Of a stretch of DNA of 64,000 nt, positions 21,102-48,400 are shown piece after piece. The first letter of the stretch is position 1. Each line of letters opens with the position of its first letter. Origin of the DNA: Lytechinus pictus (lineage: Eukaryota); the NCBI RefSeq assembly GCF_037042905.1, contig NC_087254.1, positions 10,974,001-11,038,000 of the forward strand. The letters are read 5' to 3'. Under the pieces are notes generated by a model, which was not told the origin of the DNA, made no database searches, and was given only the letters and a program-made list of their open reading frames with translations. The position numbers and the translations under genes are program-made.

Positions 21102-21348
21102 GGCCCCATTTTACAGAGTTACAATTGATCCAATCAACCTTAACTATGGAAAGCCAGCAACATCAACAACTAAAATGCATGTTCAAAATATTTTCTAGAT
21201 ATGCTGTAAAATTCATTGATTTCTTGGAAATTCAGAGTGCTTCTCTTTGTTTACAAAGGACATAGTGCAAATATTGTTTTGAAAAAATTGTGACATCAAT
21301 GGATTTCCGTATAGTTAATCTGATCAATCATAACTCTTTTTAAGGGCC
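21102..21348. mobile_element. PIF/Harbinger-like MITE, copy 3 (diverged)
   Basis: Colinear with 16012-16281. Confidence 0.65.
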
Positions 21349-21991
21349 TCGGAGGGGGGCGCTTCCATTATCGAGTATATTCCAGGCAAGACCATGGGGT
21401 TTCAAAAAGTACCCTTTACAAGTATTTTCCATGTTCTGACAATGCACCTCTTGTTTTAACAAGTACTAGCATGTGAAACCCTACCCTTGACAAGTATTCC
21501 CTGAATTGCCCCCCCCCCTAAACAAGTACAGCGATATTTTAATTATGTCAGACGTGATCACAGATGTCAGCTTTAACATTACTTATATTGGGTTTAGTAC
21601 CTCCTTACCTCGCTTAAATTGGACTCTAAAAATGTAGTGTTGGGGCCAAAAGTGAATCCTTTATAAAGCATTTGTCTTTTTATTAATTTTGTTAATGTAA
21701 CCGTAAACACTTGGCTTCCTAGCGAAATTTATACCCATTTTCAATATTTTAGTGTTTTTGACAGCCATATTACGTTACGTACGCATTCTTAAAGGACCAC
21801 TTTTACACGTTTTTTTGGTTGTGCCTGGTACCCACTCTATTGAAGTGCCTCCTCCCCCCCCCCCCCCCCCCCCGATGGGCCCCAGGGAGGGGCTTCACAA
21901 AATAAAAGCAACACGTATTCATCAAATAGCAAAGTAACAATAATGTTGGCAAGAAAAAAGAGAAGAGTGGAAAAGAGAGAGGGGTGTTTAA

Positions 21992-24467: not shown

Positions 24468-27400
24468 CTACTCGTGATCGAATTCGTCGACTTCAGCACT
24501 CTCTTCTCCAATAAAGAATTCGACTACCTCCTCCTCGTCATTCTCCTCGTCGTGTTCAATCTCGTCGGTGTCCAAACCTGATAAAAACAGACAATTTTTA
24601 ATGAGTACAATCTAAAAATGTGATGCTGTATCGATAGGTTTTCTTAAATCTATCTATTTAAAAAATTTTTTTAAACACTTGCTATCAGTCGTGAGTTTGT
24701 TTTTCAGCGAGTCCATTAAAAAAGTCGGACATACAGTTGTGCTCAAATTTAGTGAACCCCATCACAAAATCCATTCCTCCATGCTGAGCGTTGAATGTAG
24801 ACAATACTACAATATTTGGTGAGCTCAGAGAAACAAACTTTATTGAAGGTAATATTCAATCACCTGACTTCACAATTAACCATCTAAAACATGGCAGAAC
24901 TTGAACACTTTAAATATGTTCATTTTCTGGGCACCACTGTATAGTCAACAAGCTTGCATATTCCCACCATCATCGTTATCATCATCATCTTCATTTATCA
25001 TTGTTTTGTTTTCTCTTGATAATATATTATAGCAATTGTTGGCTTGTTAGATTTTTTTCTTCTCTTTTTTACATTATACTTAATTGATACTTAAATAATT
25101 CGTAATGATCAATTCTGCTCATAATATGATTATATGGTAAATATATGTTTCGGTTTGTCATATTTTTCAAGCATTTTTGTGTGTGCTTACAATGGCAATC
25201 CATCTTCTGCTACTAATTTTATGCTAAATGATATATGCCTGATTTATTGTCAATATTTGTTATATCTATGTTATATTATATAGTTATGTAGAAGAAAAAT
25301 AAAATCAAATTAGATATCCAATACGTATCCTGAAAGTGGCTACTAACCTCCTCTCAGTTGCATCCTCGTCTCCTTCTCAGTTTTGTATCTCTTCTTCAAC
25401 CTCTCCAAGACTTCCAGGAAATCATTCATCTGTTGCTGGCGACGTTCGATCAGCTCCTGAATCACAAGATATTAATTCATTTAGTATAATACAAAGAGAT
25501 CAAGAATATATTATACAACTCCCAAGTATGTTCTGTAATCTGATTGGTCCAAATCGGATCACATGATATTCAGTGAATTGCACTATTGCATCCAAAATGC
25601 ACTATCCTGCACTCTGACGTCAAGAGTGCAGGATAGTGGGAGTTCTGGAATTGTCTAGAATTATCTAAAATTTAGATCAAATATAGCATTCGCGGCAACT
25701 CAGTACCATGGGTGAGGGTTGTATAAAACAAACAATGCATGCATTCTTGTGCATAGAGGACCTAAATAATGAACTCTGTGCTCGACTCGCCAAATGGATA
25801 TACCGCACTCGTTCCTGCGGACCTCGGTGCGTACATCCATTGGCTCTTCTCAATACAATACAACTGGGGCGGGGGGAAGGAGATTCACAACAGCAGCCTT
25901 AATAGCCCCATTGCCATCAACTTCTCATATCTGGCATGATTCATTACCCATAATGCAACACTGTGAGAAGTGTAGTCTTGTAATATAGACCCACTTGAAT
26001 GAATTCACTACTCCATACATTCATATCAAATTATTATACCACCAAGTAGCAAAACATTACATTGCTTTCATGCAGCATTGAGATCTAAACTATTAATGAA
26101 ATAAGTGTTCATCAGGAGACAATGCTAGCTGATTGAATGTATTGATTCACATACCTTTGACGCCTTGGACTTCCTCTTGGCGTCTTGGAGCTCAAACATC
26201 TTGTTATACGTCTTCATGTTCTTCTTGATCTCCTGAAAAGTTAACATCATACTGCAATATTAACGACCATACATTTCACTTCAGCTACCACACAAATCAT
26301 TTATGCATCAACAGTTGCTTAAAAATGACAATCTTCTTGAGCAGGCAACATGACCCTTCAAAAAGAATACATTTTGAAATAGGAAGGTCCTGGAGCAGAA
26401 AACTTAAGGTATATAGATTACAGAATATCCTAATGTGCTAATGTATCTGGTCTGTCGGCACAAGACTACATGGCTGTCAGACAGCATGGGTAGTCTTGCT
26501 TCAAGGACCGGATTAGTCTTACTCTCAGCCATTGTTTGGACTCCAAGCAACCACTGAACAGGTTGCATGATGTGGCAGAAACATGGCTGCATTCTTTCTT
26601 CAAATTATAAATCAAATAATTACACTGGGGTGTGAGAGATCACAAATAAAAAGAGCTGAAGAATGTTGACAAAACTGAAATTAGCTGAAAATCAAACAAA
26701 AAAACGAGCTGAAATCGGCTTAAAAAGCTCTCATCCCTGATTACAAGTCGATGATAAAGTTAATTATTCAAAATAAATTACAAAGCATGTCCCAACCTTC
26801 GCTTTAAAGTTCAAAATAGCTTGTGCAAAACAGAGCTTTTGTGCCACTAAATATTTTGATAAATCAACAAGCTTGTTGCATCATTTTTCCCCAAAAAGAA
26901 AACTGACAGAAGTAAATGCTATTATACCTTAACCCTAAATAGACTGGGCTATTTCGATGCCTAAGAAGACTGGGGGGGGGGGGGCTGATTCAGCCCCCCC
27001 CTATGATCTAGGCCGTCGACCGCGACGAAAATTGGCACGTGCATTACCCATGGCATAATCTCCAAGACTGTAGGATCAAATTTTCCGAAAAATCTCATAA
27101 TTCATTAATAATGCTAATTTATGCGTAAAATCGAAGATTTGCTCTAGTTAACTAAATAAGGCCTCTAAACTGCTAATTTTTTATTCACAAACTCTTTGAA
27201 GGATTCTGATCAAATGTACTTTTAAAAAAATTCAATATCACAATTGTTTTCTTAAGTATTTTATTGTTTTTAAAATTTCTTATGTATTTCTTTGTTTTTT
27301 TACTTTTTGTTTTTTATTGTTTTTTCAATGGAAATCGTCCGCTACTTTATTTTGACCATAAACAAGATGAAATCAATTGAGTTTGATTAGTAAAATTGAA

Positions 27401-30400
27401 AATAATGATACATTTATGAATTTTGGCTAAAAACACAATTTGCATTGGATTTGTACACAAATCCACGTTTTTGAGCAATTTCGGGTCGACATGCACTTAC
27501 AAAATGTTGCGTAATTCCGGAACCACGTACCCGGGCGTCGCAAATTTAGTCTCAAAAGTTGCGCAAGACTTGGAAGAAAAAAGTCATGGAACGGCGCGGC
27601 GCCAGCTTTTCGCATTACAGATTTATCGCGAAAAATGTCGAGGGGGGGCTGAATCAGCCCCCCCCCCCCAGTCTTTTTAGGGTTAATCCACTCTATATTC
27701 TGGAAAATCAACAAACCCCCCCCCCCCCCTGCCCCGGGGAATGCAGTGAAATGAATAAAATGTTACTATACCTTAATCTTCTCTTCATTAAGCGGAGTAG
27801 GTGGGCGAGGGCGCCAGAGCGCTTGACAGAATCTCTCTCGGTCACACTTCTGCAGAAGCTTACCCTGGAAACTCCAGACCCAGTATGCATTGTCAACCTG
27901 GATGTACAATGAAACAAAACAAACTTAGGCGCAAATTTCTCTCTCCATTACTTGCTTCAATATCCTAAAGTTTGAAAAATATATCAGTAGTCTCCAATGT
28001 AGGGAAAGTGATTTTCTGGAAGATGGAAAATGTGTTTTTGCTCTTTACTTCTCATGTAAAAATTCATTTGAAATTACCTTTGCAAAATGGATTTCATATT
28101 TTTGCTGTGTAGAGTTTCTATGACAAAACTGAATTTCCATTCAATGAGTCTCATACAGCGCATCGCAAAAAATCTGCAGTTTCATACAATCGGCCCCAAG
28201 GATGTAACGAGGTTGAGATGGCACTGTTCAAAGTGGTAATAGAAGCTTCAGTTCTGCTCTTATAATCAGCACAATACTTGTCAATATAACCAGCTTCAGA
28301 GAAAAAAATAAAAATCACATGACCTTTGGCCTATACTGACCTTGTGACTCCACCAGCTGACCCCAGTGATGACATAGCGACCAGTAGAATCCCATTCGAC
28401 GTCCGTTGCCATGAAGTGTTCTGTAGCATTCATCATGGTGATCGTATCGTTGCCAGTGTCGATGAACTCAAACACACCATTCATACTGTCAAGTGGGGGG
28501 AAAAGGGAAGCAATATTATTAATTTGCAGAAAAGGTCTTAACTCTCGTGCTCTACACGTAAAATACCAGTGAATTTGTATGATATATTTACAATGATTTT
28601 TGCGGTCCGGGGGAATAAGGCTGAAAGTGTAATTGAAATAAGAACCAATCTTTTCCCTGCAACACATTGATACCGTCTCAATCTTATGTCTTATGCCATT
28701 CTGCATGATTGCATTTTACTCAGTATGTAAAATTTACAAAAGTCATTGTAGTAGTAATGTTTATACAACAAATGTCCACACTAAGGAAAATAAAATGAAA
28801 ATAGATTGAATTTAATCAAATTGAATTCTGCAAATTATCCATTACAGCTACACAACTTGGTAGAGAAACACTGCCTGAAACCCATTCCTTGCCAATAATA
28901 ATTTGCTTCATTATTCTGTGGCTCAATACCAATATTTTGATCTCGTTTGTAAAACTGGAAAGAAACGAATTTTATCATTTAATCATCTTTGGTCAATGAT
29001 ATTTGAAACATGATAAAAATCTACATGAAGCAGGATGAATGTTTGAAGCTTTTTTGGCATAAATGCCCTACAAGATTTTTTATTGTACACAGGTGTATCT
29101 GGTCTGTCGGCACAAGACTACATGGCTGTCAGACAGCATGGGTAGTCTTGCTTCAAGGACCGGATAGGATTTACTCTCAGCCATTTGTATGGACTCCAAG
29201 CAACCACTGAACAGGTCACATAGAGTGTGTCAGAAACATGGCTCAGCGGAAACAGCGAGGAAGGAAAAAGGTAAGTGCATGAGTGAAATTGACTTACCTC
29301 CTAAGCCCAGCGAGCACAACAAACTGACCAGCCGGGGACCAGAAGATACTATTGGCTGTTCTCCTTTCCAGAGTCTCTGTACAAATAAAAATCGAAAAAC
29401 TATATTACATTTTGGCTGATCAGTATGATAAATCATTGTCACAGATGTTTAATCAACAGATATGCAGTGAATTATTTTTTAAACAATTTTAACTAGTACA
29501 GACAATACTATAGCCTTGTGTCAATACCTTGACATTTCTGGTACAGGCAAAAAGAAAAATCAACATTTTTTTCGGGGGCTACTTTTCACAACTAATTGCC
29601 TCAATCTGCAACACTGGATAAGCTTTAACATCGCAATGAATTGGGATTTTCCAGCCCCCCGTATTTTAGTTTCCCCGGCTCTTTTCAGCATTTTGGGGGC
29701 CAAATTGCCCCAGGCCCCTTGTATTTTTTTCCCGTTCTGGTGTATCTGGTCTGTCGGCACAAGACTACATGGCTGTCAGACAGCATGGGTAGTCTTGCTT
29801 CAAGGACCGGATAGGATTTACTCTCAGCCATTTGTATGGACTCCAAGCAACCACAGAACAGGTCGCATAGAGTGTGTCAGAAACATGGCTAAATCATGAA
29901 AAGTATTAGAGGTGAAATATGACTGAAACTTCAGTACGCACACAAACAATAAATAAACCCCAGAACTGAAATAAACTAACAATGTTTTTCACACTTATTT
30001 TCCTTGATACATGTATGACTAGGACGATATGGTAGCAGTTGTTACTTTCACGATATCAACACACTTACAAAAGCAAATTTTGAAGGCCGACTAGCAAATT
30101 CATAACTGAACAACCTGTAAATGTGAGCAAATGAGAGCAAAATCAAAGTTATACAAGACAAGCTTGCAGGTCAAACTCACTGATAAGCTCTACTTTTCCC
30201 TTTGGCTTGATGTTGTAGAAGCTAACCGAGATTCGAGGGGATTCCCCATGTAAGATGGCAAACTTGTTCCCTGTTGGCTCCCATGCAAACGCCACAATGA
30301 CTTCCTTCACTTCTATCGAATCCACCGGAATCTGCTTCTCTTGCATTCGGAAGATCTCGAAGTTGGTGAATTGGTTCTGAAAGAAGAGCACACACACAAA

Positions 30401-33400
30401 AAAAAAGGAATTAGACAAATCTCCAAGAAAACATTTTATATTTCTGAATTCGGAAGAACTCAAAGTTGATTGGTTCTGAAAAGAAGTATGGATTTCATTC
30501 CAGACCACACTTTCGGGTCCACTGGAACACAAAGGTTAGCAGTTGATCATAAGTTTGATTTTCACTACTGATTCTGTACATTGTAGTCAATGCAATCAAT
30601 TGTAAAGATATTCTTCAAGGATGACTGCTTAGCTTTGTGTTATAGCCTCAGATATTATTATTGTTTGAAATATTTAATATGAAAAGGGAAAATTATAAAA
30701 TAGTAATGGAGGAGAAACCAACATCATTGGCAAACACACAATTTTTTTCTCTCAGTTTCAGAATAATTTTCTATGGCATTGCAGGGGTATGAATAGCAAG
30801 CACCCTGTCTACGACAATTTTCTTCCATAAAAATAAAGATGTTAGATAATCGAATAAAAGATATGCTAAAAATAAAGTTGTCAGATGAATTTCACACAAT
30901 TTTTCCAAAATTCAGTAAGATCTTCCATCTCAGTATGAGGCGTAACAGTAAACTCCATACCTATGGCCGAATGTTTCCATGACAATGACAGTTAAATTGA
31001 TTTCACACGATCAATGACACACTGAAGCACAGGTTTCCAAATTCTGAATATATCAAGTCTGTATCTGGTCTGTCGGCACAAGACTACATGGCTGTCAGAC
31101 AGCATGGGTAGTCTTGCTTCAAGGACCGGATTGGTCTTACTCTCAGCCATTGTTTGGACTCCAAGTGACCACTGAACAGGTCACATGATGTGGCAGAAAC
31201 ATGGCTGAATCATTAGAAGATAACACATCTCTAGGACACAAATTACAATGAATGAATTCTGCTGCATAGCAAGAGCTCATATCCCATGAGGTAACATCTT
31301 AAACACACATAAAATAGCAAAAGCTGAATTTCTAATTCCATAAGTCAAATATTCGCCAAAGTGAAAGCAACTTTTTGTAACCAGATTATGCAAAACAGAT
31401 GAAATATCCCTCTTCTAAGTAAAAATTCTGCGAAGTCAAAAGATTTCTGGGATCCCAGGCGATTCAACTTACGCATAGTTACCTTGTCATGTGTCCGTTG
31501 GCATGTAACCACAACTTAAGTCACACTCAACTCTTTGTGAAACACTACCTCCAAGCTTTGTCAACTCACTCACCTTCTTGCTCTTTGAGAGCCTATGAAC
31601 CTTGCAGCACATGTAATGACCTTGTTTGTCAGGCCACAGACCTTGTTTGTTAGGTCAAAGACCTTGTTTGTTGCTCTCAGGGTTTGTCTACTCACTCACC
31701 TTCTTGCTCTGTGAGAGCCTATCGTCCTTGCAGCACATACCTTGTTTGTCAGGTCAAAGACCTTGTTTGTTAGGTCAATGACATTGTTTGTTAGGTCCAA
31801 GACGTTTGTTACTTTAAGGTTCAACTCTACTCACCTTCTTGCTCTTGGAGAGCCTATTGTCCTTGCAGCACATGTAATGACCTTGTTTGTTAGGTCCAAG
31901 ACGTTTGTTACTTTAAGGTTCAACTCTACTCACCTTCTTGCTCTTGGAGAGCCTATTGTCCTTGCAGCACATGTAATGACCTTGTTTGTTAGGTCCAAGA
32001 CGTTTGCTACTTTAAGGTTCAACTCTACTCACCTTCTTCCTCTTGGAGAGCCTATTGTCCTTGCAGAACATGTAATGACCTTGTTTGTTAGGTCCAAGAC
32101 GTTTGCTACTTTAAGGTTCAACTCTACTCACCTTCTTGCTCTTGGAGAGCCTATCGTCCATGCAGCACATACAATGACCTTGTATGTCACGTCAAAGACC
32201 TTGTTTGTCAGGTCAATGACATTGTTTGTTAGGTCCAAGACGTTTGTTACTTTAAGGTTCAACTCTACTCACCTTCTTGCTCTTGGAGAGCCTATCGACC
32301 TTGCAGCACATGTAATGGCCCTGTTTCTGCCAATGTAGCTTACAATCAGCCACGTTGAAGAGATTCTTGACTCTAACTTCTTTCCTAGAAGGGATGGCAA
32401 TCAATGTCACTCGGGCCGGGTTCTCTTTCTCTTCCGGAGTCCAGTAACTCAGGATGTTACTCGCAGGTGACCAGCAGAACTCCCTGGATAAAGAAGGGAT
32501 ACACATAAAATAACACTGATGTAGATCACAATGTTTGCAAGGCACATATAATTTTGTCTCTCTGCCTATCTCTATTTCTATCTATTTGCAGTGTATCTAT
32601 TAATGTGTCCATTCAAGATTTTGCCCTACCTACCTACCTACCTATCTGTAGTAATTTCAGTTGTTAAAACATTTCAATGATTCTATCTGCAAACAATACT
32701 CATATTAGAATTCACCTAGATAAAATGTTTCTGGTCTGTCGGCACAAGACTACATGGCTGTCAGACAGCTAGGGTAGTCTTGCTTCAAGGACCGGATAGG
32801 ATTTACTCTCAGCCATTTGTTTGGACTCCAAGTGACCACTATACAGGTCACATGATGTGGCAGAAACATGGCTGAATCATTAGACAATAACACATCTCTA
32901 GGACTAGGAAACAAATTACACTGAATGGGTATATCAGGGTTCCCAGCTTTTCAAGAAAACTAAATTCCCTGATTTTTCCCTGATGAAGTTTAAAAATTCC
33001 TTGATTATTATTTAAACCAATTCCCAAGTTCGCATGTTTTCTAAGTTGTTGCCATGAATTACATGTATTTTCAGTATAAAAACAATAATGTAAAACTTAA
33101 GTTAGTACTATTGCACAGGCATGTAATGGCCTCCCTTCTCCCCATACAGTCATCCTTTCCTCACCTTATACAGAAAGAGGTTGTTATGCAACAAAATATA
33201 AGAGTAGGACTGACTACCGTGCTTTCAACTTTTGGGCTGATCAAAATTCCCTGAATTTTCCCTCATTTGAGGCATTTTTCCCAGATTTGCGGTATTCTTT
33301 TAATCAAATCCCCTTATTTTTTCCTCACTGGAAAAAGTAAAATAATTTTCCATGATTTTCCCGATGGGCTGGGAGCCCTGGTATATACTCTACTGCATAG

Positions 33401-36400
33401 CAAGAACTCATTTTTCTCTATCCTCACTTTGCCTCATGATATTCTCAAACACACAGACTCTGTACATATCGGCTTTGAAGAAATCTGTTTTCTAACAGTT
33501 CAATATTCTCCAGTTGAAAGTTTGTTTTAGATTATGGTATTTGACAAAAATGCTACCTTATTATGCAGTATAACAAACTCAACTTTATTTTACCCGAAAT
33601 GCAATATCTACTGCATTGCAAGAACTCATTTTTCTCTATCCTCACTTTGCCTCATGATATTCTCCAATATCACACAGACTCTGTACAGATCAGCTTTGAA
33701 GAAATCTGTTCTCTAACAGTTCAATATTCTCAAGTTGAAATTTTGTTTTAGATTATCGTATTTGACAAAAATGCTAGCTTACTATGCAGTATAACAAACT
33801 CAACTTTATTTTACCCAAAATGCAATATCATATATTCCATGACAAAAATACCCTACCAACCATCATATAAAATACAACTGAGAATTTAATAGAAAATGTA
33901 ATAATCTCACCTAATGCCCACTATTTTGAGACTCTTTTTCTCCAGTAGTCCAAATGAAGGAGTCTCATATATACTAAGTGTGTCTTCTGACATCCTAGCA
34001 AAGAACTTTCCATCATGACTCCACCTATACAGTAGGCAGAGGGAAAACATGCAATTTGATTACAGTGCGGCTAGATCTGATATAAGAATGCAAGTTAGCA
34101 ACACGGAAAAAACAGCATTGTCATTTTTAGAACATGTATCATGGGGAGCATTTCATCAACATTTTCATCCGACGTGTTGTCAGGTCTGACAACTTTCCTT
34201 GAGCATGATTGGCTGAGAGGTACTGTTACCATGGTAACTGTCGGATAAAACAGTACTTGTCGGATAAAATGTCTGAAGTGTCCTTTCATGAAACGGTCCC
34301 CTACTAACCCTTTGGCCTGAATTCACAAAGGTGGTTATGAAAACCCACGGTTGAGTCCATGGTTTATGCAGATTTCCTGTATAAATTACGCTTATTTAAC
34401 CACGTATATTAAAAAATGTCCACTGCTGATGCGCGCTTTTGTCACGGTGCGCCAAATTTACACCTGTTGCCGTAGTTATCCACGCTATTTTATTCATGAG
34501 TCCACTGTTTTGAATCAATGAGTCCACTCTTCAAACAGTGGACTCATGGATAAAATAGCGTATCTAACTATGGTAACAGGCGTCAATTTGGCGCACTGTG
34601 AAAAAAACGCGCATTAGCATTGGACATTTTTTATACACGCGCCCTATACGTGTAATTCATACAGGAAATCTGCATAAACCATGGATTCAACCGTGGGTTT
34701 TCAAAACCACCTTTGTGAATTTGGGCCTTTGGGGTCCAACCCCAATATTTCTCCATTCTTACTCCACCACATGACCTGCTCAAGTCGTGATGATTGGATG
34801 GCAATCCAACTTTCCTTATGAACTAGAAGACAGAGACAAATCATTTCAAGGTCTTTAGCGGAATTGCCGATATATCATTTATCAATAGAAAGTATGTGAA
34901 CACTCCAATAATTTTCTTAATGTATCTGGTCTGTCGGCACAAGACTACATGGCTGTCAGACAGCACGGGTAGTCTTGCTTCAAGGACCGGATAGGATTTA
35001 CTCTCAGCCATTTGTTTGGACTCCAAGCAACCACTGAACAGGTTGCATAGAGTGTGTCAGAAACATGGCTGAAATCTGTACATTACAAACTCCACATAAG
35101 GCATTAGCAGTGAACATGTGCTGCAAACTACACAGGTAGGGCTTTGTTTAGTGATATGAAAGACCACACAAATGTTGCAAAGGCAAGCAACTTTTCTGTT
35201 GTTGCAAGGCAAGGCAAGGCAACAAATAACTACAGACACATCAAATCCTTAGGCCCAAATTCACAAAGGTGGTTTTCAAAACCATCGGTTTAACCCATGT
35301 TTTACGCAGATTTCCTGTATATATCATGCTTATTTACCGCGTATATTAAAAAATGTCCAATACTGATGCACACTTTTGTCACAGTGCGTCAAATTGATGC
35401 CTGTTGCTGTGGTTATCCACGCCATTTCATTCAGGACCACAGGTGACAAAAGCCTGCATCAGCATTGCACATTTTTTAATATACGCGGTAAATAATTGTA
35501 ATTTATACAGGAAATCTGCATAAACCATGGGTTAAACTGATGGTTTTAAAAACCTCCTTTGTAAATTTGGGCCTTAAAGTTTAACGCAATTCAAAACATA
35601 TATTTGCAAAATGATCGATTCATATTTGTGTGGACTATCGTAACTACTGACATGATTTAACACATCTCATGATGTTATGGTGAAATCATTATGATATAAT
35701 ATGATGCCAGCCATGACACCACAATAAAATCTTTTATATCATCTTGAGATTTCCATGCAGCTTTGGAGTTTAAATCCTCATTACAACTTGAAGAAAATGA
35801 TGCATGTTTATTAGCACAAGAGTTGGGATTTTTCTAACTCTACATGAAAAATATAAAGACGTTGCTATTCTTTTCCGAACCATAACTAAGCAAGGCTGAG
35901 GTGGGGGGGGGGGGAGGGTGGAGGATACTTTACAATAGGAAAGCCTCTTACTTGAATACTGGCCAATTGGAAGCATTATCACATGAGAAACCTCTCTTCT
36001 TGGCTCCCGTCTTGATGTCCCAGATGATGATTGCTTGAAACTCGTCTCTCGGATCATGAAGAGGGCTGAATGTCACAATATACCTGAGAAGGTGAATAAG
36101 AGGGAGAGAGAGAAATAGAATTAACTAAGAAATTATATCTCAAAACAATATATGCAATATTTATATAATACATAATACAAATGTTTCTAAATGCTTCACA
36201 TCATTACCCCAGCTTTGGTATAGCTGCCAATAAGGCAATACAGCTTTGCAGGGTATATAATCCAAGGATGATTGTGGCAAATGTAGGTTAACGCCTTGCA
36301 GAGGACATCAAGAGCGGAGGCAGGAATTAAACCCAGAACCTAATTATCTATAGTCTGGATCTATGTGGGAGGTTTCCCCTCCCCTTCTTTCTACACATGC

Positions 36401-39400
36401 AAACGAATAACACTATATTTAATACAAGTTGAATAGCGATCTATCTAATCAATCATACTACCTCTTCAAAATTCTAATAACTACTGATGCACTTATGTAT
36501 CTGGTCTGTCGGCACAAGACTACATGGCTGTCAGACAGCATGGGTAGTCTTGCTTCAAGGACCGGATTAGTTTTACTCTCAGCCATTTGTTTGGACTCCA
36601 AGCAACCACTGAACAGGTCACATGATGTGGCAGAAACATGGCTGTATTTCGTTTATCTAAACTCAAATTAAATAGCAGTATTGCACAGGGATGAGAGAGC
36701 ATCAAATATCAATCCAACATTAAGACTGTCCCACTGTGGGGCCACTTTCACAAGACTTCCAATTATGGCAGCTTTGCCATTATGGTAACTACCATGGTAA
36801 CAATGCTCAACAGCAATTCACAACCAAAGTTTCCAGGGTGGTTACCATTAGGGCAAAGTTATCCTAATCACAACGAAAGGACAGACCAGGGCCTCTAAGT
36901 ATAAAAGTGTTTGACCCACTGACCCTGGTAAAATAAGACGTAATAAATAAAATAAATAAATAGACCAATGAGTAAAACAAAGTACAACCAATTACTCCCG
37001 CCCTATTACATACCTTTCGCATGGTGATACATCAATGAGCTGGACACCGGGATGGGCAAACCTTCTGATCTGCTGGAAGTTTTCCCCACCCCACAATGCA
37101 ATACCTTTCTGATGGAAGGTCACGAGGTACGTCCCTAACGGAGACCAGCGAATGTACGTCTCCGTCCACCGCTGGAAAGAAATATTTCGCAATAGAGATG
37201 GTTTAAATTCACTTTATAGTCTACTTCAGTCTAATATCTCCACCTATTCGATATACAATCACTTTGGTCTACTTGACATTTGGTAGATTATTCTTGGTCA
37301 AATATCTACTCATGTCTAATTCTCATTTATTCTAATGACATTCAAATGTTCAGATATTCAAATTTCCACTTCGTATACCAAATATTTTGCACTTTGACGA
37401 ATGACAATTTAATCAATTTACATCATTAACAGTTCATCTAACCATTAGTCTAATTGGTCTTAGACGAAGTGGACATTTGACAAATGGTGAAAGCCTAACA
37501 GGAAATAAGAAATTAATTTACAATTAGAGACAGAACTCAGGAAATGAAAATGTCACCCCCCAAAAAAAAAAAAATAATAATAATAATATGGAAATAAAAA
37601 ATAAAAATTAGTAATAAGTTCTCATTTAGAATCTACTTCTTTCCCCACTAGAAGTGATGGCAAATAGTCTATTATTTAAATTTTACAAAACAGAGAAATG
37701 CCTGAAAATGCATACAACTATTCTGTGAGGAAAATGTATCTGGTCTGTCGGCACAAGACTACATGGCTGTCAGACAGCTAGGGTAACCTTGCTTCAAGGA
37801 CCGGATAGGATTTACTCTCAGCCATTGTTTGGACTCCAAGTGACCACTGAACAGGTCACATGATGTGGCAGAAACATGGCTATATGAAATGGCAAGTGTA
37901 TTTGAATAAGTGGGCAGGTCATTCCATGAAATAAGTACATCAGAAAAGTTATGCGAAACCTTCCTGCAAATATCTGTCTATATGCTTTTTTTTTTTCAAA
38001 TTTGGTTTGGTGAATCTTTTGAATCATAACTCAAGTGGCTCATCAATTGTAATAGTGTGTCGACAATGGGGCTTGGTATATAAAAAAAATGCTCATGTAC
38101 AGAATAAACACAGTATTATGTAGACTTCAAATTAGTGAAGTTAGTCAATAACATGTTATGTTACAGTTGATCATTCATGATGCAACCTGAATAACATTTC
38201 AAACTTCACAATGCATTAATTGACTTGTGATCAATTTCTGACCTTAATTTGATTTGCAACTGATTGCAATTTTCAGGAATGCCCTATAAGGTAAAACAAA
38301 AATATTCAAACATTGTCTAACCTTCCTCTCTTCTACAACCGACGCCTCTGTCTTGCTGTTGAGCAGGATAGCAGTGGTCTCACCACCATCAGATATGACA
38401 CTGTATTGATCGTTGCATTCCTTATCTAGCAACCAGCTCCTCATGTTACCCTGTCAATACAAACAATCAATGCATCTATATGAGGGTGTTTTTTCTTAAA
38501 TGACCAGTGGCATCCAAGAATGTGCATAAGACAAGAGCATCGTCAAATACTAAATTAAACTGCCAAGCAAAATGTAATGAGCGGTACAAGTTATACAGGG
38601 ATGCCAGTCACAGCATGTAGACATTGCAGCATCCCATGTGTTGTACAATACAAAGCCTGAAAATGGGAGGTTGCCAGTGCCTAAAATAAGAAAAAGCCTG
38701 CACCAATGCTGGCCTGCAGACTGACATATTTCTTTCAGAATGAAATTCAAATTGTGATGAACAGATAAGCATTTCAGCATAATACTATAGTGCTCATTGA
38801 AACATTTTTAGAACAAAAGTTGTTGTAAACGTACATTCAGTATACTAACCGCCCTTTCACACGGCACCAAAATCGTAATTTAAATGATGATTCCAGTGAA
38901 AAATAATACTAATGACAAATTTTTAGCACTTGTGAAACTGAACTAGAACCATGAACGCTAATCACGATCACGAATTCAAATTCTACTCCGGAGGTGAATT
39001 CCATTAAGTTTCACTCAAATTACGGTACAAATTTTTCGTCTGAAAGGGTTGACCTCCCGACGTCTTTTGAGGGGCCGAGCTTACGTGACCTTTCAAGCAC
39101 TTCCGTAGATAATACAATTGTCATGCACTCATCGTTTCGTTTTTGCAATGCAGTGCTTTGATTGGGTTTGATTGACAAGTCACCAAGGACACAGTACCGC
39201 CTTCGCTCAGGAATTCGAATTCAGATCAGTTTTCAAGCAAACGTGTGAATGGTACAATGATTCTAAAGACAAATTGCAATCATCATTACAATGATTATTC
39301 AAGATTCTCGTGTGAAAAGGCCCTAAGACTGCAAGAAAATTATTGAACATACAGGGTGCTACATAAGCACTTGCCCGATTGCCCGGGGCAAGTAAAAGTT

Positions 39401-42400
39401 AAAGTCGGGCAAATGTTTTGAAGTAAAGACCAAAACTACTTGCCCGAATTGGGCAAGCAAAAATTCTCACAGTAGAATGACCAAAATTAGGGTCATGGTG
39501 GAAAAGATAAAATCACTTTGGAAAAAGAAATGTAAGAACAAGGTACATCAGTTCATGTCAAAAGAGAGAAAAAAGGGTCAATGGTTTAACCGCAATATTT
39601 TCTTTTGAAGAGGCAAACTTTTTTTCAAGGATTTTTTCGGGCAAGTGAAATAGATTTCGGGCAAGTATATTCCAACTATTCAAAAAGTTATGTAGCACCC
39701 CGACATAGCTGTCAAAGACGGATAGCTGGACCAGGTGACGTGCACACATAATGGATAAGTTACCCACAAGGCACAAGGGTAAAGATGGGTCAGTACGTTT
39801 ATTGCTAAAAGCCTGAGCTAGACTTACATGATCTTTGTATGGCTGCTTCTCGGGTGAGGTCCATTCATCCGGTAGATTCATAAACCTATCAATAGAAGGA
39901 ACAATCAAATCAAATCATTAATCAAGCCTTTCTTAAATATGAACATGTATTTACAACAATTATGTACGAGGCAATTTTTCATGACATAATTCTTCACATT
40001 AATTTAAATCCGGGTTCCACACATCACAGCTGCCGCCGCCAAACTGAGCAAATTTCTGTGATCTGTGTGTCCAACGTTCTCATGGTCACATCTAGCAGTG
40101 CACCCTCCCTACATCTTATCTTAGTCTCTAGAACCTTGCCCCTAAAAAGCATGAACCACTTTTCCTTACACAAATAGCTAGAGCAAACATAGAAATCCCC
40201 CCCCCCCCCCAAAAGAAAAAAAAAAAACTTTCAAAGCTGCTCATCAATAACAAGTTGAAAACTACTATAATAAACTACTAAAATTGTGTCATCTAATAAA
40301 TGAAAGCATGAAACAACACCCTTGTCCTTATCAAAATCAGGATTATGGCACAAGAAGATGACCCTATCAAATCACAATATAAAATGGCTACAAGAAGAGC
40401 AACTTACTTGTCAAAATCTGTGATCAAGTTAACAGCAAACGTATGCTGTTTATCAAGCTTGTACCCACTCAATTGCTTGGCAGCTTCGATGGCGTTTTCA
40501 GGTGATTTGTATTCGACGAAAACATACCTGTGGTGCAAAAATTAAAAAGGAATAAGAATTCTTAATTACGTAAAAAGGATCTCCGTTGATGCTTTGCAAA
40601 AGAACAGTAAAAACAAATCTTGGTAATAAACTTCGGGATTCTTGATCTCTCAAGATTCCTTGTACCAATACTAGAATATTTCAATTCTACAGAATTAGAA
40701 AGAAACCTAGAAAGAACTAGAAAGAAAAGGAGGAAGAACTCTCTCCTATCCTCCAACATCAGACTATTCTAGGAGCTGTATTTATCTCCATTCTTCTTTT
40801 TGTCAAAATATCAGCAAAAATTGAAATATTATTCATGTAACAGAAGGCAAAAGAATCAGTGGCGCTGCTTCTCTCATGAGCACATCACTGTGCTGTACAT
40901 GTGTACATGTTTTGTGAAATCTTTCAAGATCCGATTTTTGATTAAATTAGTTTGATTCTTCTCTAACTATTCAAAATCAAGTTTTTTGTTGGGGGGGGGG
41001 GGGGGGAATGCCCTTTACAGTGAATGGGTGTCAGCTCTCATGGGGAATAGATTATTTGTTGATCCCAGATTATGTAAAAAGCAGTGGAAATACCTGTAAT
41101 AGAGGGTAAGCTGTCGATTCGTCTATTGCCAATTCATCCACTCATCACATGGTCTACCTTTATTTAGTCTCATGCCATTCCATCCATCAACATTTCGTCT
41201 AACAACCATTTGGTCCATTAACCATTTGGTCCAATAATTACTTCGTCTAATCACCAGTTCGTCTATGACCATTACGTCTAATAACCAGTTACATGTAGTC
41301 TTATACCCATTTTCTTTTCATTCATTTCGCCCATTCAACACTTATCCAATTAGACCAAATGGTTTATGGACTAAATGGCTATTGGACCAACTGGTTATTT
41401 ACCAAAAAGGTGAGTGGACGAAATGGCAATTGGACCATGTACTATAGTGGACGAATTGATGATAGATCAAATGATAGTAGATGAGTTGGTAATTAGAGGA
41501 ATTGGCATTAGACCAATTGGAAATAAACATAACAGAGACATCTTTTGGGGAAAGCAAACTCTGTATACCAGCAAGAAGCCTCGGGCAACAGTGTCAGGCC
41601 AGGAAATCTGAGAAAATGACTACCATATAAGGCATTTTCCAGTGGCATTACATAACAAGTCATAAATCTCAATCTTCCATGGTTAACCAAGAGTGGTGTC
41701 AAATCCCCCTTGAAAGCCGACACCCCCACTAACTTCAAAGATTATTACCCTTTTGTCTTGCCATCCTCAGCATCAGGATAGTGCTCTGTGCTGATCTCTC
41801 CATACTTGCTACAAACTTTCCTGATGACGTTCTTCAGCTTTGGTAACCGATCTGCTCCAACCTGTGGTACATTGTCGATGACAATTACAGAATCGATGCC
41901 AAGAGCTTCCTTTGGTTTGGTTCGAAGTATATCACCGAGAAGTTCTGCAATGAGAGGTTTATACAAGGTTTATAATATTAAGAATGATCTGCAAGTTCGA
42001 TTAAAAATAAGTTTATATAACTTACATTGAATGCACCATTTATTCTTCAGTAACTCAAATAGCTCTGCTATTTGAGCGTAACTAAGATCTTAGACCCAGC
42101 GAGTGTACAAGGTCATAAATGTGAAGACTCACAGGAAGATCAAACTTTTTGACAGCATTCCGTGAAGAAAGTCATATACATTACTGATTCATTTTGTCAA
42201 AAAAAATGTGGAACAACTTTTTTTATGTTACAACTCAACTTTATCATCTGCCGTGCCAGCCACATCCTCTGTGAGAAATGTTTTTCCTGATCTTGTTAAG
42301 GCTTTTTTTAGTGCTCAGTTAATATTGTTACATCATCAGTTATTTGCAATGTGCGATCTAGTCTTTTGCTGAGATTAAGAGGGTGAATTTCTAGAAGACT

Positions 42401-45400
42401 AGATTAGGTTTTGTACTGTTGTACCAAATATTTAACATACAAAAATAAAAGGTCATCAATAAAAAAAAAATGAAGGGCATTTGGTCACCACAGTCAGGGT
42501 CAGAGACATAGTCCAGACACCTGGGGCAGTTTTCTGAAAACCGTGTTAGCACAAAAACGGTGTCAGCTAACACGATTGGTATTCTAAAAATAGTGTTAGT
42601 ATGAAAAACATGTGGCCCAAGTGGTAACACCGAGTAGGTCATGAAATACGCAGTGCGCAACGTGCAACCCCCATACGCGGTGTTAGGGAGGAACATAACA
42701 TGAAATTTGGTATTCTGAAAATGGTGTTAGCTAAAATTTTGTTCAAAGATAAGTAGATAACACAAAAATTCAACACTGCGATAAGGAGGTTAAGTTAGGG
42801 AACACGATGGCTGCACTTTTCTAGCAGACGCAAACGTCAAAAAGAACATATCCGGGCATAAAGCTATCATCTGGCAGAATTTACTGTAATTTTCTTTCAT
42901 TTAGGGATGCCAGTTGGAATTGATCAGAGGGCCTGAAAATCACCTAGAATACAATAATTTGTACACAAAAATGCTATAACTACGGCCTGAAAATAAATTG
43001 CCAGAGCCTGAATTTCAGGCTTTTGCCTGAAGACTGGCATCCCTGTTTCATTATTCCAGCTTTATTTTCCATCTCCCTTTTCTCTACTAACAATGATTAA
43101 AGTTTAACAAAAATTTCTTTGGAATTTCCTGTGAAAATACACTTCAAATGCATCTTTAATTTGGATTAATTCAAATCATTATCATATATGCTCATGAGTT
43201 ATTTATTTGGTTACTTTTTGCCATAATATAAAAAAGACAAAAGGAGAGAAAGAAAATTAAAAACATCTAAAAAGGAGAGAAAGAAAATTAAAAACATCTT
43301 TAAAAAAGCATGAACGGAAATTAAAAAGAATGGAATTAGCGATTAGGGAACTCTTCTATAATATTCACAATTTTTTAAAACCCTTTTTCAATGGTTACAT
43401 GTATATATAGTTCCATTGATACAATTTTTTAAACTCTCAATGCTTCTAGGTAATCCTTAATTCATCTATCCCGCCAGTCAATCTATATGCTTCGGATGTG
43501 GGAGGATGGGGAGGGGGGGGGGAAGGGGCTGATCGCTACACGCATCAAATTTTAATTCTGTCTCCTGTTATAATTTCGTACCCATGCTGTCTGAAATAAT
43601 CCATTCTTAATTGTCACAATCACCCCTCCCCATGTCTCTTTCTCGCTCTAACTTTTTATTTAGCTGTAGATCTAGGCTCTATGCGTTTCCAAAATGATGT
43701 AACAATGCAGGCTTCATGTCATCGTGCGCACACTCCCCTTTTCCCTGAAAAGATTTTTTCTTTAACAGCGCATTTGATTGGCTTAAAAAGATGCAGATTG
43801 GGAGGAGCTGAAGCTAGATTAACACGAAATGAGATAACACGGTTTTCAGAATCCGGATTTGGGGGGTATTAGGGGCGTGTTAAATCAGAGATAACACGGT
43901 CAATATTTATACCAAAGTTAACACGTTAACACAGTTTTCAGAATACCGCCCCAGCAGTAACACAACTCCACCAGCGCATCCAGAAACTGAACTTGACGTC
44001 TTGACTCGAGACGAAAATAAATGGATGAACACAAAAATGAAGCCAGGCTTTTTTCATGTTTTTTTTTGGGGGGGTTCTTCTTATCTTATCAAAATATCAG
44101 CAACGTACTAGTACAGGTTAACACATGAACTGTAACATTAAAGCTTTCAACCGCTATTCCATACTAGTAGGGTGTCTGGACGTTTTTCAGAAATCACCTA
44201 TTTTGTGAATTAAATCACTGTCACGTAGCAGAAAGTGAAGAGAATATCTGAAATAACATGTAAATCAAGTTTCATAACTCACAAGCATTTAAATCCAGAG
44301 ATATTTGCTTCTAAAGTTTGGCACATTTTCAGATTAAAACGTAAGCGATATCACACCGATAGTGGCACATTTTGCTTGACCTAAAACACACACAGAGCTG
44401 CTGTACGCCGCATCGCATTGAAGGGGCCGGGGCGGAGTTGGAAGGGCGCGCAATACATTCATTACCGCTTTCGTTGTCAAGTTTGCCTTTCAAATACGCA
44501 ACTTATCAACTGCTCATGAATAATGCGTTCGTAGACGGACACGTCTGGGTCACTGCTCTAGTTGAAAGGTCACATATACGTCACAATAGAGATTACGAGT
44601 ACTTCGCCAAGCACAAGGTTGCATCTTATTTAGAGTGGAGATCAGTGGTTGCATCACAATGCATAAATCATCGGACTTGCATTCAAGTACATGTCGTATG
44701 TGCACACAATAATGGTGTGTGGATGTACCATGTGATTTACGTGCACCGTGCCGTACCGCGATATGCCATTGCTTTTGTGTACTACCAAGGAGCTTCTTGG
44801 TACTACCAGTACCAGGGATTCCCCGATGTGCGACGGCAACCCACGTGCAGCATGGAGTGATGAGTCATTAGTATGACGTACCAGAATGACATTGCAATAC
44901 GTCATAATAATGTTCTTACCACCATAGGCGGCGGCGGGACAGGTTCCCCCCTAAATTTGAGGTGGGGGGGGGGGTGGTCCCCCTAAATTTTAGTTGATAA
45001 TCTGTTTTATTTTATTTTTTTCTGCTTGTCAATTTTATTTCCTGCGTCCCCCCCCTAAAGTCAGCGTGGACCCCCCTAAAATGTTTCTGCCCCCCCCTAA
45101 AATTTTAGTTGATTGCCTTTTTTTTTTTGCTTGTCAATTTTGTTTAACCTGTTATCATCACAAAATTTCGGGTGGAACCCCCTAAATTTTTTGACTTCGC
45201 CGCCAATGCTTACCACACGCCAGATCAATTTCCTCATGTCAATTTAAGGTCTATACTTGACTTAATAAAATGTTTGAAAGGTGAACTCAGGGCTGAAAAT
45301 GATTTCTGAATAAATAGGGTAAGATTCACCAAGCAAAGGCTGGAAATTTTTATGAAAATCTGATAAAAAGTAACTAAGTTATTGAATTTTAAAGATTATT

Positions 45401-48400
45401 GATGTTTTGTGAAGATAATTATATGCACGTCGTCATCAATATTCATTAGGCCGATTATGTCACATCCCTACTCTTTTTTCTTAAGATATCACATATAAGA
45501 TGTGAGTATGGTATGTCTCCTTAACAAGCCTTGCAGCAAAGAGTATCAAATGTATTAAATCTGTTGTCAGTTTTTGTTTTCATTCTTGGAGGACAAATTG
45601 AACATAATTTTATAATATACGAAAAAATAAATTGGGATATTTCACGTGACACGATCACTTTGCTCATGATTGAATATTGATGAAGACAGTAAAGAGTTGT
45701 TTCACTGAAATCTTAAGCATGCTGTAACCTTGATATTAAGTGTCCAATTTTAATAATGTCGACTTTTGTTTCAAATAGTATTATTTTTCACATAGAGTTT
45801 CATTCCGATTTCATAACGATCATTGCTGATTTGATTTATACCCCCCCCCCTCACCCCACATACATACCCTAAGTCTTACGTTATTTATCATCATTGTCAA
45901 CCACCATCGATCACGCACTATTGTCATATTTTTATTAGGGCAATTCCATAAAATATGTACGTTCGAACCTCTATATTTGGGATCTTCATGAAATTTTCGG
46001 TCTCTATGATTCTTGGTTCTTTTGACAGTCTGTAACGCTGTCAAATGACCATGACTTGGCCAGTTTATTAAGTGATGTAAGACTTTAGAAAAATGGGGGT
46101 CGAATGTACAGAAAGCTTGATCATTTTACGGAATTGCCCATTATCCAAACCATCATGCAATCAAAACCATGCACACCCACTCGTACATCATCACCCTGAG
46201 TTCATTTATCACAAAGGCCAATCATCATCGTGAATCCATTTCATCACTTAGGAAAAAAAAGAAATAGTCATTAAAACTTTTTCTCTGTTTGTATATGTCC
46301 ATAAAACCATAAACATCAGAATCCACACTTCATTTCATGCAGGCAAATCATCACCATCAAAACACTTCATCATGGCGCATTATGTTTACCATCATTTTTA
46401 GATGCAATTAAACTTCAAGATGAAAATATAACTTTATTCTACTTTTCTTTATTTCAGATTTATTAGGAAACGATAGAGGGGTTTCGATCGTCGGACCTAA
46501 GAAATGAGAATCACCGAGAACTCAAAAATAAAACACATATATAGAGCTTGTATTTCTGTTTCCTTGTCAACTATTCAAGTCATCTTTATTCTAAAATCGA
46601 GTTGACATATATGATATATGCTGTTTCATTTCAAGATGCTTAACTCACACAAAATAACGGAATAATACCAAGTGAAATATTTTAAACCGTTCACAATTGT
46701 AAAATGTCCACAAGGTTTTTCTGAAGAACCTGTATATAATACTACTGAGAGTAACTGCCTCAATATCTTGTCAACTTTCAATTGGGGAAAACATTGAACA
46801 CACGAACTACCATACGCATTATTCTTTGCATGAAAATTGCTGTATTATTTGGAAGTTCAGCTGAATATTAAGCACAATTTGGGACACGACGTGGTTTTTA
46901 TGAATAGGCCTTTCAAGCCTCTTGCGTTTTCATTTTGTGTATCCCCAATTATTCATTTTCAAAACATTGAGTTCCCCATGAAATTGGCGGCATCACAGAT
47001 CGATCACCGCAAGGGGCTTACAGAGTGTATATATAGTGCATTTTTTTCTCTAATCTGCACATACCGTTACGACTCTTTACATTCTTATAAACTTATTATC
47101 ACAGAGTATATAATCATCGTATTATCATGGCCATATACAGCCGAGGCGATAATACTTTATTTGAGCAACAGAATCCCTACCCGACTGCTCTACCTTATTA
47201 CATAATATGTATTTACACAGGTATTGATTCATTTACAAAGACAATATATTTATAGAATAAACTCGTCTTTCTATAAGAGTAAAAGTTCAGTTCAATTTGT
47301 GCATATTATTCACGCAATTAATTACTTCGTAATTACTGCGTAAGGGCCTATACTCCCAATTCAGAATAATATGTTTGCCAAGAGCTTGCTTGATTACTGC
47401 TGTGTTGTATAATAAATAAAAAGAGCTCCAGTGTTGACAGTCTTCGATTTATACATAACGCGATGATCTTCCACCACAAGATGATAACTTGCTGAACTCA
47501 AAAGGTAAGTCCACTCTTCATGCTCTTTATTTTCGAGCGTCTGTTCAACTAACTCTATTTCTGCATGAATTGTGTTTACACTAAATTGGTACAAATAATG
47601 TGTTCACGTGTGTTCGTGATGGTCATAACGTCAAAGGTCATCTATTGGTCAAAATATCATGTCATACATGTAAGCGATAGAGACCACAGACCCGTGAACG
47701 ACCATGTTCATGAATGCATAGCAGAACTAAATGCTTCAGTCACTATTTTCTCCTTCCGGAAAAAAAATATAATCGAGCATTCATTGCAACTCGATATTCA
47801 ATACTAGTATAGGTATATGTTATAATAACTTTATATTTCTGAAGCTTTTTTTAAATTCCATCTATTACAATCGAGTATACATTGTAGCTCGATTTATGCA
47901 GCTAATTCTTTATATCAGTTGCCGTTTTCTTGCATCTATTAAAATAAGCTCATTCTGGCAATCATACCTTATATAATTCGATTTATAGGCCCAACTAAAC
48001 TTTCTCAAAAATTCGCACATCTCCTTTCCAATAATCTTCCAACAATGCTCCATCCCATGTATTTTCTTCGTCATCGCTTTCATCATTTAAACTCTCGTAT
48101 TCCACCTTGCAAGATTTATCTACACCATAGCCATCTTCTGCCTCAACTACATAACCGGTAAACCATACCTTTGCGTTGTCTACTTCCCATTTGTGTCTTA
48201 TCTTATACCCTACTAATTCTCTTGCTGATATATCTTTAACATACATATCCCCACTGTTCAAGTCTTCAACTACATCATTTTTGGGATACGAGTATACAGT
48301 TTGTGTATTGGACAAATAGACAAAATTCATCGACTCATTGTTTTTACTGAGGACGAATGCGGAGTACCAGTTTTCTCCTCCATCATCTTCTGTTAAATGT

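Follow-up and report, generated by a model that had tools for sequence, protein, structure and literature searches.

In yeast, snR34 is encoded by an independent gene, and its human counterpart SNORA65 (U65) lies in an intron of a ribosomal-protein gene, RPL12. Both of the rRNA sites concerned fall within the peptidyl-transferase centre, and the pseudouridine at E. coli position 2457 is universally conserved. Yeast snR34 guides psi2826, which is equivalent to E. coli 2457, and, 54 nt beyond it, psi2880 (PMC11121408). In vertebrates, snoRNA paralogues commonly arise by intragenic (cis) duplication into different introns of one host gene, and in the chicken some 90% of H/ACA snoRNAs are single-copy (PMC2653536). 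Our search of the literature returned nothing on sea-urchin H/ACA snoRNAs and no paper tying eIF3b to any snoRNA.

A repeat search of a 64,000-nt stretch of the Lytechinus pictus genome (the window) found a family of exactly eight copies, each about 150 nt long and 88-98% alike, all on the minus strand and all within introns of the gene for eIF3b. We set out below how these elements compare with snR34 and SNORA65 and with known intronic snoRNA arrays.

The host gene and its intronic copies

The S. purpuratus eIF3b protein, used as a tblastn query, matches the window in 15 exons with a mean identity of 87%, and a last exon at about 24471-24611 was placed from its open frame and from a DNA match to the last exons of S. 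purpuratus and Diadema. The host gene contains RRM_1 and eIF2A domains (Pfam) and matches PDB eIF3b chains with E of about 1e-30, and GT..AG splice joints in RNA-seq reads confirm three of its introns, namely 8 (32483-33909), 9 (30377-32272) and 10 (29377-30180). The features are as follows, with the limits given by the repeat search in brackets.

24471..53857, minus strand: host gene eIF3b (tblastn, S. purpuratus eIF3b protein query)
53696-53857, 41748-41945, 40395-40526, 39819-39905, 38322-38453, 37004-37174, minus strand: first six eIF3b exons
35951-36085, 33910-34032, 32273-32506, 30158-30379, 29300-29377, minus strand: next five eIF3b exons
28338-28493, 27772-27900, 26155-26232, 25346-25459, about 24471-24611, minus strand: last five eIF3b exons
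37732..37881 (37733-37884), minus strand: snoRNA copy in eIF3b intron 5, covariance model 177 bits, placed by the exon map
36493..36643 (36494-36645), minus strand: snoRNA copy in eIF3b intron 6, covariance model 187 bits
34918..35070 (34919-35070), minus strand: snoRNA copy in eIF3b intron 7, 177 bits
32723..32873 (32724-32875), minus strand: snoRNA copy in eIF3b intron 8, 180 bits
31057..31206 (31058-31209), minus strand: snoRNA copy in eIF3b intron 9, 180 bits
29738..29890 (29739-29890), minus strand: snoRNA copy in eIF3b intron 10, variant 5' pocket, 173 bits
29091..29243 (29092-29243), minus strand: snoRNA copy in eIF3b intron 11, variant 5' pocket, 173 bits
26439..26588 (26440-26591), minus strand: snoRNA copy in eIF3b intron 13, 182 bits

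An earlier reading of the window, made from the sequence only, had placed one element in each of introns 5-11 and 13, every one sense to eIF3b and none elsewhere in the window, and this arrangement is borne out on each point. The positions agree with the tblastn exon map and the RNA-seq splice joints, the last copy lying between exon 13 (27772-27900) and exon 14 (26155-26232) and intron 12 having no copy; covariance-model scores are 173-187 bits for the minus strand against 19-28 bits for the plus strand, and the model matches nothing in the window beyond the eight copies. When the copies are aligned, similarity starts abruptly at AGCCAUG and ends at ACA, and the copies have no flanking sequence in common, apart from some 50 nt that those of introns 8 and 9 share on their upstream side.

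The intron-6 copy is nearest to the family consensus, and pockets and targets were sought with it as the reference; the intron-5 copy carries the standard 5' guide CUGCCAC. All eight copies retain the two boxes and the two hairpins, and their 3' pockets are identical. Three of the eight (introns 7, 10 and 11) depart from the consensus by an A-G mismatch at the centre of the 5' guide; in the alignments, the intron-7 copy shows it as a variant 5' pocket with a C-to-A change in the guide and a CU insertion. In the intron-8 copy, an A in place of U breaks the basal pair beside the ACA box.

Copies across the genome

BLAST and the covariance model agree on a total of ten copies in the 811-Mb genome, the eight in eIF3b and two at RPS3, where both are sense-oriented and the flanking exons carry KH_2 and Ribosomal_S3_C (Pfam). 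The sequence-only reading had named hundreds of dispersed copies in random orientation as the finding that would speak against it. Because the genome holds only two further copies, both sense at RPS3, the family is not a transposon. A SINE- or MITE-like short non-autonomous mobile element that landed by chance in eIF3b introns would share with this family its multiple copies, sharp borders and unshared flanks, and retroposition is a known route of snoRNA spread (PMC1687206); such an origin is nevertheless scarcely credible, as just ten copies occur in 811 Mb, all of them sense and in or beside two translation genes, and as covarying stems and conserved guides recur in three urchin species at matching intron positions. 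Comparison of the flanks likewise upholds the earlier report that terminal inverted repeats, target-site duplications and poly-A are wanting: terminal repeats, target-site duplications and a consistent A-tail are all absent. The mobile-element explanation is already contradicted by these observations.

Fold, boxes and covariation

The fold that had been proposed from the letters, hairpin-AGAGUA-hairpin-ACA, was recovered as the RNAalifold consensus. The H box reads AGAGUA in 10/10 L. pictus copies and AGAGAA, AUAGAA or AUAUAA in Diadema copies, and the ACA does not vary among the 26 copies of three species, with similarity stopping directly after it and the RNA-seq reads showing no end pile-ups. 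Compensatory changes had also been claimed, together with G-U intermediates that pair only on the minus strand, and both can be seen in the alignments: two pairs of the 5'-hairpin upper stem vary, as U-A/C-G/U-G and as G-C/G-U/A-U, and every one-sided stem change gives a G-U that pairs only in minus-strand RNA. Among the ten genomic copies, pairing holds in 98.7% of stem cells. Over the 26 copies of the three species, both-sided change affects five pairs and 15 cells, with 93% of cells paired, and the covariation score was reached by 0/500 shuffles, with slid controls only 26-43% paired.

Guide pockets and predicted rRNA targets

Targets were sought in L. pictus's own 18S, 5.8S and 28S rRNAs with canonical pocket borders and matches of at least 9 bp, and each pocket gave exactly one such match, the 3' pocket at 28S U3249 and the 5' pocket at 28S U3195. 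In the 5' pocket, CUGCCAC (5' strand) and GUC (3' strand) pair 7+3 bp at U3195, in AACUGGC[U]UGUGGCAG, with a distance to the H box of 16-17 nt, at the upper limit of the usual 14-16 nt; the 3' pocket (5' strand GAA, 3' strand GCCGACA) pairs 7+3 bp at U3249, in GAUGUCGGC[U]CUUCC, 15 nt from the ACA. Shuffled guides found 10 bp somewhere in 5-8% of trials, and at U3195/U3249 in 0/2000. The two uridines are separated by 54 nt, and a gap-free alignment places them at positions 2457 and 2511 of E. coli 23S rRNA; the pockets are thus predicted to guide the large-subunit uridines that correspond to positions 2826 and 2880 in yeast. In a looser definition, the 5' pocket can also pair 7+4 bp at 28S U2728; this rival target was ranked lower, as it leaves three guide bases unpaired under the upper stem and relies on nucleotides that are variable in Diadema. 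The rRNAs offered no convincing alternative target for the copies with the C-to-A change.

Relationship to SNORA65 and snR34

At gathering thresholds, Rfam gives no match anywhere in the window. SNORA65 (RF00302) is the only H/ACA family that Rfam reports, at 19.9-22.3 bits against a gathering threshold of 70, and the 5' hairpin fails to align structurally to its model; in the 3' pocket, the SNORA65 consensus AGGAA...UGUGCCGAA stands against UUGAAG...UGUGCCGAC here. A protein-database search by way of translated open reading frames found no snoRNA homologues.

These scores bear on whether the elements might be real H/ACA RNAs that do something other than guide the snR34 sites, as orphans, as guides for other RNAs or as Cajal-body scaRNAs. 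The shortfall from the Rfam score for SNORA65 is in keeping with such a role, as are the fit of U2728 to a looser 5' pocket and the shorter strand of each pocket, GUC in the 5' pocket and GAA in the 3' pocket, which forms only 3 bp. We nonetheless consider it unlikely, as the matches are unique at both sites of one known family and have the same 54-nt spacing (PMC11121408), as the guide positions are invariant over 26 copies, the C-to-A variants aside, while the stems vary, and as the CAB box UGAG is missing from both apical loops, which read UGUUCAGU and CUG. The best explanation overall, and one that we hold to be very probable, is that the elements are functional or near-functional genes for the sea-urchin equivalent of snR34 in yeast and SNORA65 in humans. 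That they are H/ACA snoRNA genes, one to an intron of a translation-factor gene, had been claimed from the window alone, and the ten sense copies, the target matches and the conserved array all support it.

Expression and processing

Two stranded rRNA-depleted RNA-seq runs and one poly(A) run were used, at low depth because only about 6% of each run was read. In the rRNA-depleted runs, reads lie on most of the copies examined in the same orientation as the eIF3b exons, at depths of 0-4.7 for the copies versus 0.7-4.6 for the exons, and in the poly(A) run the exons reach 15-31 versus 0.64 or less for the copies. Sense depth was 2.8-4.7 on the intron-11 copy in the rRNA-depleted runs (0.64 with poly(A)) and 2.0-2.5 on the intron-9 copy in the same type of run; the intron-7 copy had a mean depth of 1.28 in one run (X21) and 0 in another (X22), and the intron-8 copy had zero reads, in a count where multi-copy reads are not assignable to single copies.

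Because the copies are intronic, each would be transcribed within the eIF3b pre-mRNA, and exonucleases would presumably then trim each one out of its own spliced intron while the dyskerin complex protects it, a step modelled on how animal intronic H/ACA snoRNAs are made. With up to eight snoRNAs per eIF3b transcript, output would therefore be tied to host transcription, and an eightfold amplified dosage that links rRNA modification to the transcription of eIF3b, as the sequence-only reading supposed, is plausible. We infer that high dosage may be a selected trait.

The array in other echinoderms

A survey of eIF3b introns in related species had been suggested as a check, and it located the array in two other sea urchins. 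S. purpuratus eIF3b has ten sense copies, in introns 2, 5-11, 13 and 15, and Diadema antillarum eIF3b has six, in introns 5, 7, 8, 10, 12 and 13, with one broken copy in intron 14; positional orthology is read from intron number alone, because L. pictus flanks align with those of S. purpuratus or Diadema at exons only. The guides CUGCCAC and UGUGCCGACA are retained in both species, and the C-to-A guide variant occurs in three L. pictus copies and one S. purpuratus copy. No copies were found in the eIF3b genes of Apostichopus, Asterias, Amphiura and Antedon (sea cucumber, sea star, brittle star and feather star), the best match there scoring 12.7 bits (E = 0.2) with the three-species model and filters off. 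Nor did the model match three long animal contigs with an eIF3b exon (10 kb on each side); the exon-sized eIF3b query otherwise reached only distant ORF fragments. The exact 18-nt pattern of the 3' pocket was present in 28 bacterial or gut metagenome contigs, with 0 model matches, and these hits were put down to chance.

The copies cluster by species and not by intron, and this grouping points to concerted evolution. The array would have arisen in the echinoid lineage by within-gene duplication, after the sea-cucumber split and before the Diadema/camarodont divergence, with copy number since kept at 6-10 and with the copies of each species homogenised, gene conversion being the likeliest means.

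It might be argued that most copies are decaying pseudogenes and that one or a few, perhaps those at RPS3, supply the functional RNA. The mismatched 5' guide in three copies, the broken ACA-adjacent basal pair and absent reads of the intron-8 copy, and the broken Diadema copy in intron 14 are what decay would produce, but the boxes, hairpins and identical 3' pocket retained by all eight copies, their 88-98% identity amid introns saturated with change between species, and the 6-10 copies held in three lineages make this quite improbable. A stronger form of the counterpart reading, that the array is a long-lived, selected dosage device confined to sea urchins, kept uniform by gene conversion for about 200 million years or more and with a guide that is beginning to diversify, is put forward tentatively, as a possibility to which we give rather less than even weight. 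If it were true, snoRNP assembly on most eIF3b introns might feed back on host splicing or output. Ribosome production is very high in sea-urchin oogenesis, and the array offers material for asking whether copy number matters in that setting.

Comparison with known systems

Compared with snR34 and SNORA65 (RF00302), the elements are alike in being two-hairpin box H/ACA guides whose predicted targets are both snR34 positions, with a 3' pocket that is nearly letter-for-letter the Rfam consensus UGUGCCGA of SNORA65; they differ in number, with ten copies per L. pictus genome versus one, and in their hosts, here eIF3b and RPS3. They would supply an apparently unannotated echinoid snR34/SNORA65 counterpart, missed by the Rfam model at its gathering threshold.

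Like other cis-duplicated intronic paralogues, the copies are found one per intron in the orientation of the host, with guides preserved as the stems change. Unlike them, they occupy 8-10 of 15 introns of a protein-coding host, which is high for H/ACA snoRNAs, and form an array that persists across echinoids with copies that cluster by species. The locus is also a clean case of a snoRNA family that switched host gene and then spread through most of the host's introns, and its concerted evolution in three species gives usable material on the homogenisation of intronic snoRNA paralogues.

With imprinted clusters of the SNORD115/116 type the array shares many near-identical copies, one per intron, in a single transcription unit. 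Those clusters, however, consist of box C/D RNAs, mostly orphan, in repeated non-coding host units, whereas the eIF3b copies lie between unique coding exons of an essential gene and have clear predicted rRNA targets. The array is an ordinary kind of gene at an unusually high copy number and no new kind of system; with it, a known family gains a new, amplified member and a new host.

Eight intronic H/ACA snoRNAs in eIF3b

The minus-strand exons are those of eIF3b: they match PDB eIF3b chains at E about 1e-30 and carry the Pfam domains RRM_1 and eIF2A. With the Strongylocentrotus purpuratus eIF3b protein as tblastn query, 15 exons were mapped at 87% mean identity, which marks the DNA as that of a sea urchin other than S. 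purpuratus, and RNA-seq splice joints gave GT..AG introns on the minus strand at 29377-30180, 30377-32272 and 32483-33909. A repeat search over 25000-39500 recovered a single family of exactly eight copies, ~152 nt each, where the sequence-only reading had placed eight paralogous snoRNAs. The exon map and splice joints agree with its claim of one per intron, the copies lying in introns 5, 6, 7, 8, 9, 10, 11 and 13, with intron 12 empty.

53696-53857, minus strand: eIF3b exon 1, beyond a transposon sitting in intron 1
31568-32412, eIF3b intron 9: tandem array of 99-nt units (repeat search)

A minus-strand alignment that included 20 nt of flanking sequence showed sharp borders to the copies, with similarity running from AGCCAUG to ACA between unrelated flanks. 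RNAalifold reproduced the proposed fold of hairpin, AGAGUA hinge, hairpin and ACA on the copy set, and the compensatory change described in the upper stem of the 5′ hairpin was recovered, with varying pairs U-A/C-G/U-G and G-C/G-U/A-U; one-sided stem changes are all G-U and pair in the minus-strand RNA only. With a covariance model derived from them, the copies score 173-187 bits on the minus strand versus 19-28 bits on the plus strand, and the model finds no further match in the window, as had been claimed. The 3′ hairpin is near-invariant. Two differences are common to the copies of introns 7, 10 and 11. One is a CU insertion, making the upper stem longer; the other, also present in the S. 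purpuratus intron-2 copy, replaces C by A midway along the 5′ guide and gives an A-G mismatch with the target described below. No convincing new target was found for this variant guide.

Other features of the eIF3b introns were also observed. Intron 1 contains a 1246-aa open frame (47995-51735, minus strand). Each 99-nt unit in intron 9 holds a copy of the last ~56 nt of exon 9 at 80-93% identity, judged against the S. purpuratus exon, so that exon 9 has ~six repeated pseudo-ends within this intron; the beginning of exon 10 is partly copied at 30445-30486. The intron-7 copy has repeats on both sides (34306-34729 and 35244-35575), comprising three direct-repeat families (D5-D7; 93-104 nt, 83-85% identity) and a 186-nt inverted match between the two flanks (80%), and contig depth there is very high in all runs, which marks these sequences as dispersed repeats of one family. 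At 34480-34563, a long perfect hairpin matches MIR6426 weakly (35 bits versus 96). In intron 8, RNA reads over 32962-33332 include backward joints, from 33258 or 33279 to position 32962, as well as short skips carrying extra bases; each of the three raw-read RNA runs (X21, X22 and X24) has such reads, the poly(A) run alone contributing 133, and they probably reflect a transcribed repeat or structural variant.

Predicted rRNA targets and relationship to snR34

Targets were sought in an rDNA unit of the same genome, with 18S, 5.8S and 28S delimited using Rfam. When the pocket borders are set canonically, a single site of at least 9 bp exists for each pocket across the three rRNAs. The 3′ pocket (5′ strand GAA, 3′ strand GCCGACA) is predicted to direct modification of 28S U3249 in GAUGUCGGC[U]CUUCC, pairing over 7+3 bp with the ACA box 15 nt away, and the 5′ pocket (5′ strand CUGCCAC, 3′ strand GUC) that of 28S U3195 in AACUGGC[U]UGUGGCAG, likewise pairing over 7+3 bp, with the H box 16-17 nt away. 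Among shuffled guides, 5-8% of trials gave a 10-bp match at some position and 0/2000 gave one at U3195/U3249. A rival 5′ site, 28S U2728 (7+4 bp), arises under a looser pocket definition; it ranks lower, as it leaves three guide bases unpaired below the upper stem and depends on positions variable in Diadema, where CUGCCAC is conserved.

The urchin 28S segment aligns gap-free to E. coli 23S. The annotated E. coli rRNA lacks one base at its start. Positions were counted from the peptidyl-transferase-centre landmark GAUAAC (G2447-C2452 in the established numbering), by which U3195 corresponds to E. coli 2457 and U3249 to 2511. In yeast, psi2826 (equivalent to E. coli psi2457) is directed by snR34, and psi2880 is tabulated among the modifications lost on snoRNA deletion (PMC11121408). 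The 54-nt spacing of U3195 and U3249 equals that of the snR34 sites 2826 and 2880.

In Rfam, SNORA65 was the sole H/ACA family matched by the copies, at 21-22 bits, under the cut-off of 70. SNORA65 is the human counterpart of snR34, and in the 3′ pocket its consensus reads ...UGUGCCGAA where the urchin copies read UGUGCCGAC.

Genomic distribution

BLAST with one copy as query found 10 places in the 811-Mb assembly of the same animal, and a covariance search in which scoring was limited to the top candidates of an initial pass recovered the same 10. The two extra copies are plus-strand copies on a different contig, lying among exons of that strand that encode KH_2 and Ribosomal_S3_C (Pfam) and identify the gene as RPS3.

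RPS3-locus copy 1, plus strand: intron after the S3_C exon
RPS3-locus copy 2, plus strand: ~2.4 kb past the exon ending ...SEQK

A transposon would be expected to leave hundreds of dispersed, randomly oriented copies; ten copies, all sense and only at two translation genes, are the opposite of that pattern. Downstream of RPS3 (C20:13916043-13923534; RPS3-region loci L012 and L014) lies a minisatellite of several kb, whose units give endless reading frames of the HHNTGPLLHTTPFSL type on either strand.

Expression

Two stranded rRNA-depleted runs with the same species label and one poly(A) run with a related label were used, ~6% of each being examined; multi-copy reads are not assignable to one copy. 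In the rRNA-depleted runs, reads on the copies have the orientation of those on eIF3b exons.

Mean depth in 200-nt bins, two rRNA-depleted runs
Intron 11 copy: 4.7/2.8
Intron 10 copy: 0.4/1.1
Intron 9 copy: 2.5/2.1
Intron 8 copy: 0/0
Intron 7 copy: 1.3/0
eIF3b exon bins: 0.7-4.6

In the poly(A) run, exon bins had a depth of 15-31 and copy bins at most 0.64. No RNA ends of the copies were resolved in this ~6% of reads. The pattern fits, if thinly, a stable non-polyadenylated intron product.

Evolution of the array in echinoids

Named echinoderm eIF3b proteins were obtained from a full-length eIF3b representative and their genomic loci compared. S. purpuratus eIF3b has 10 sense copies (161-187 bits; introns 2, 5-11, 13 and 15) and that of Diadema antillarum six (111-140 bits; introns 5, 7, 8, 10, 12 and 13), together with a broken copy in intron 14, its halves ~400 nt apart in intervals 20990-21151 and 21525-21684 of the Diadema eIF3b locus (L061).

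Diadema intron 14, 5′ half: guide and H-box region retained, 37 bits
Diadema intron 14, 3′ half: 3′ pocket and ACA retained, 73-nt apical-loop insert, 30 bits

No copy was found in eIF3b of the sea cucumber, sea star, brittle star or feather star, even when filters were disabled and the model was built from three species. The survey of relatives suggested in the sequence-only reading thus separates three urchins from four other echinoderms, which makes the array an echinoid feature older than the Diadema-camarodont split, about 200-250 million years ago. Among 26 copies pooled from the three urchins, five stem pairs and 15 cells are changed on both sides, the covariation score is reached by 0/500 shuffles, and 93% of cells are paired in the proposed structure versus 26-43% in slid controls.

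Copies from the same intron in this urchin and S. purpuratus are 92.0% alike and those from different introns 91.8%; against Diadema, too, same-intron copies are no closer. On the maximum-likelihood tree the species label requires 2 changes, the minimum, and the intron label 21, with clade support of 96 for Diadema and 85 for S. purpuratus; a derived base, CCUAGAAG for CCUUGAAG, is found in 10/10 S. purpuratus copies and 0/16 others. Between species the exons alone align, so the introns outside the copies are saturated with change. These results are most simply explained by gene conversion that keeps old copies of stable position uniform in each genome, together with some gain and loss of copies.

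Comparison with known systems

Intragenic duplication that places snoRNA paralogues in separate introns of a single host gene is described as common (PMC2653536). No paper linking eIF3b with a snoRNA, or treating H/ACA snoRNAs of sea urchins, was found in our literature search. The dosage interpretation proposed for the array is reasonable but unproven. The array is, on solid grounds, an additional example of the known intronic paralogue arrangement. Its specific features are its family, an snR34/SNORA65-type guide to the peptidyl-transferase centre, its hosts, eIF3b and RPS3, a copy number (8-10 of 15 introns) that is high for an H/ACA family, and the three-species evidence of concerted evolution.
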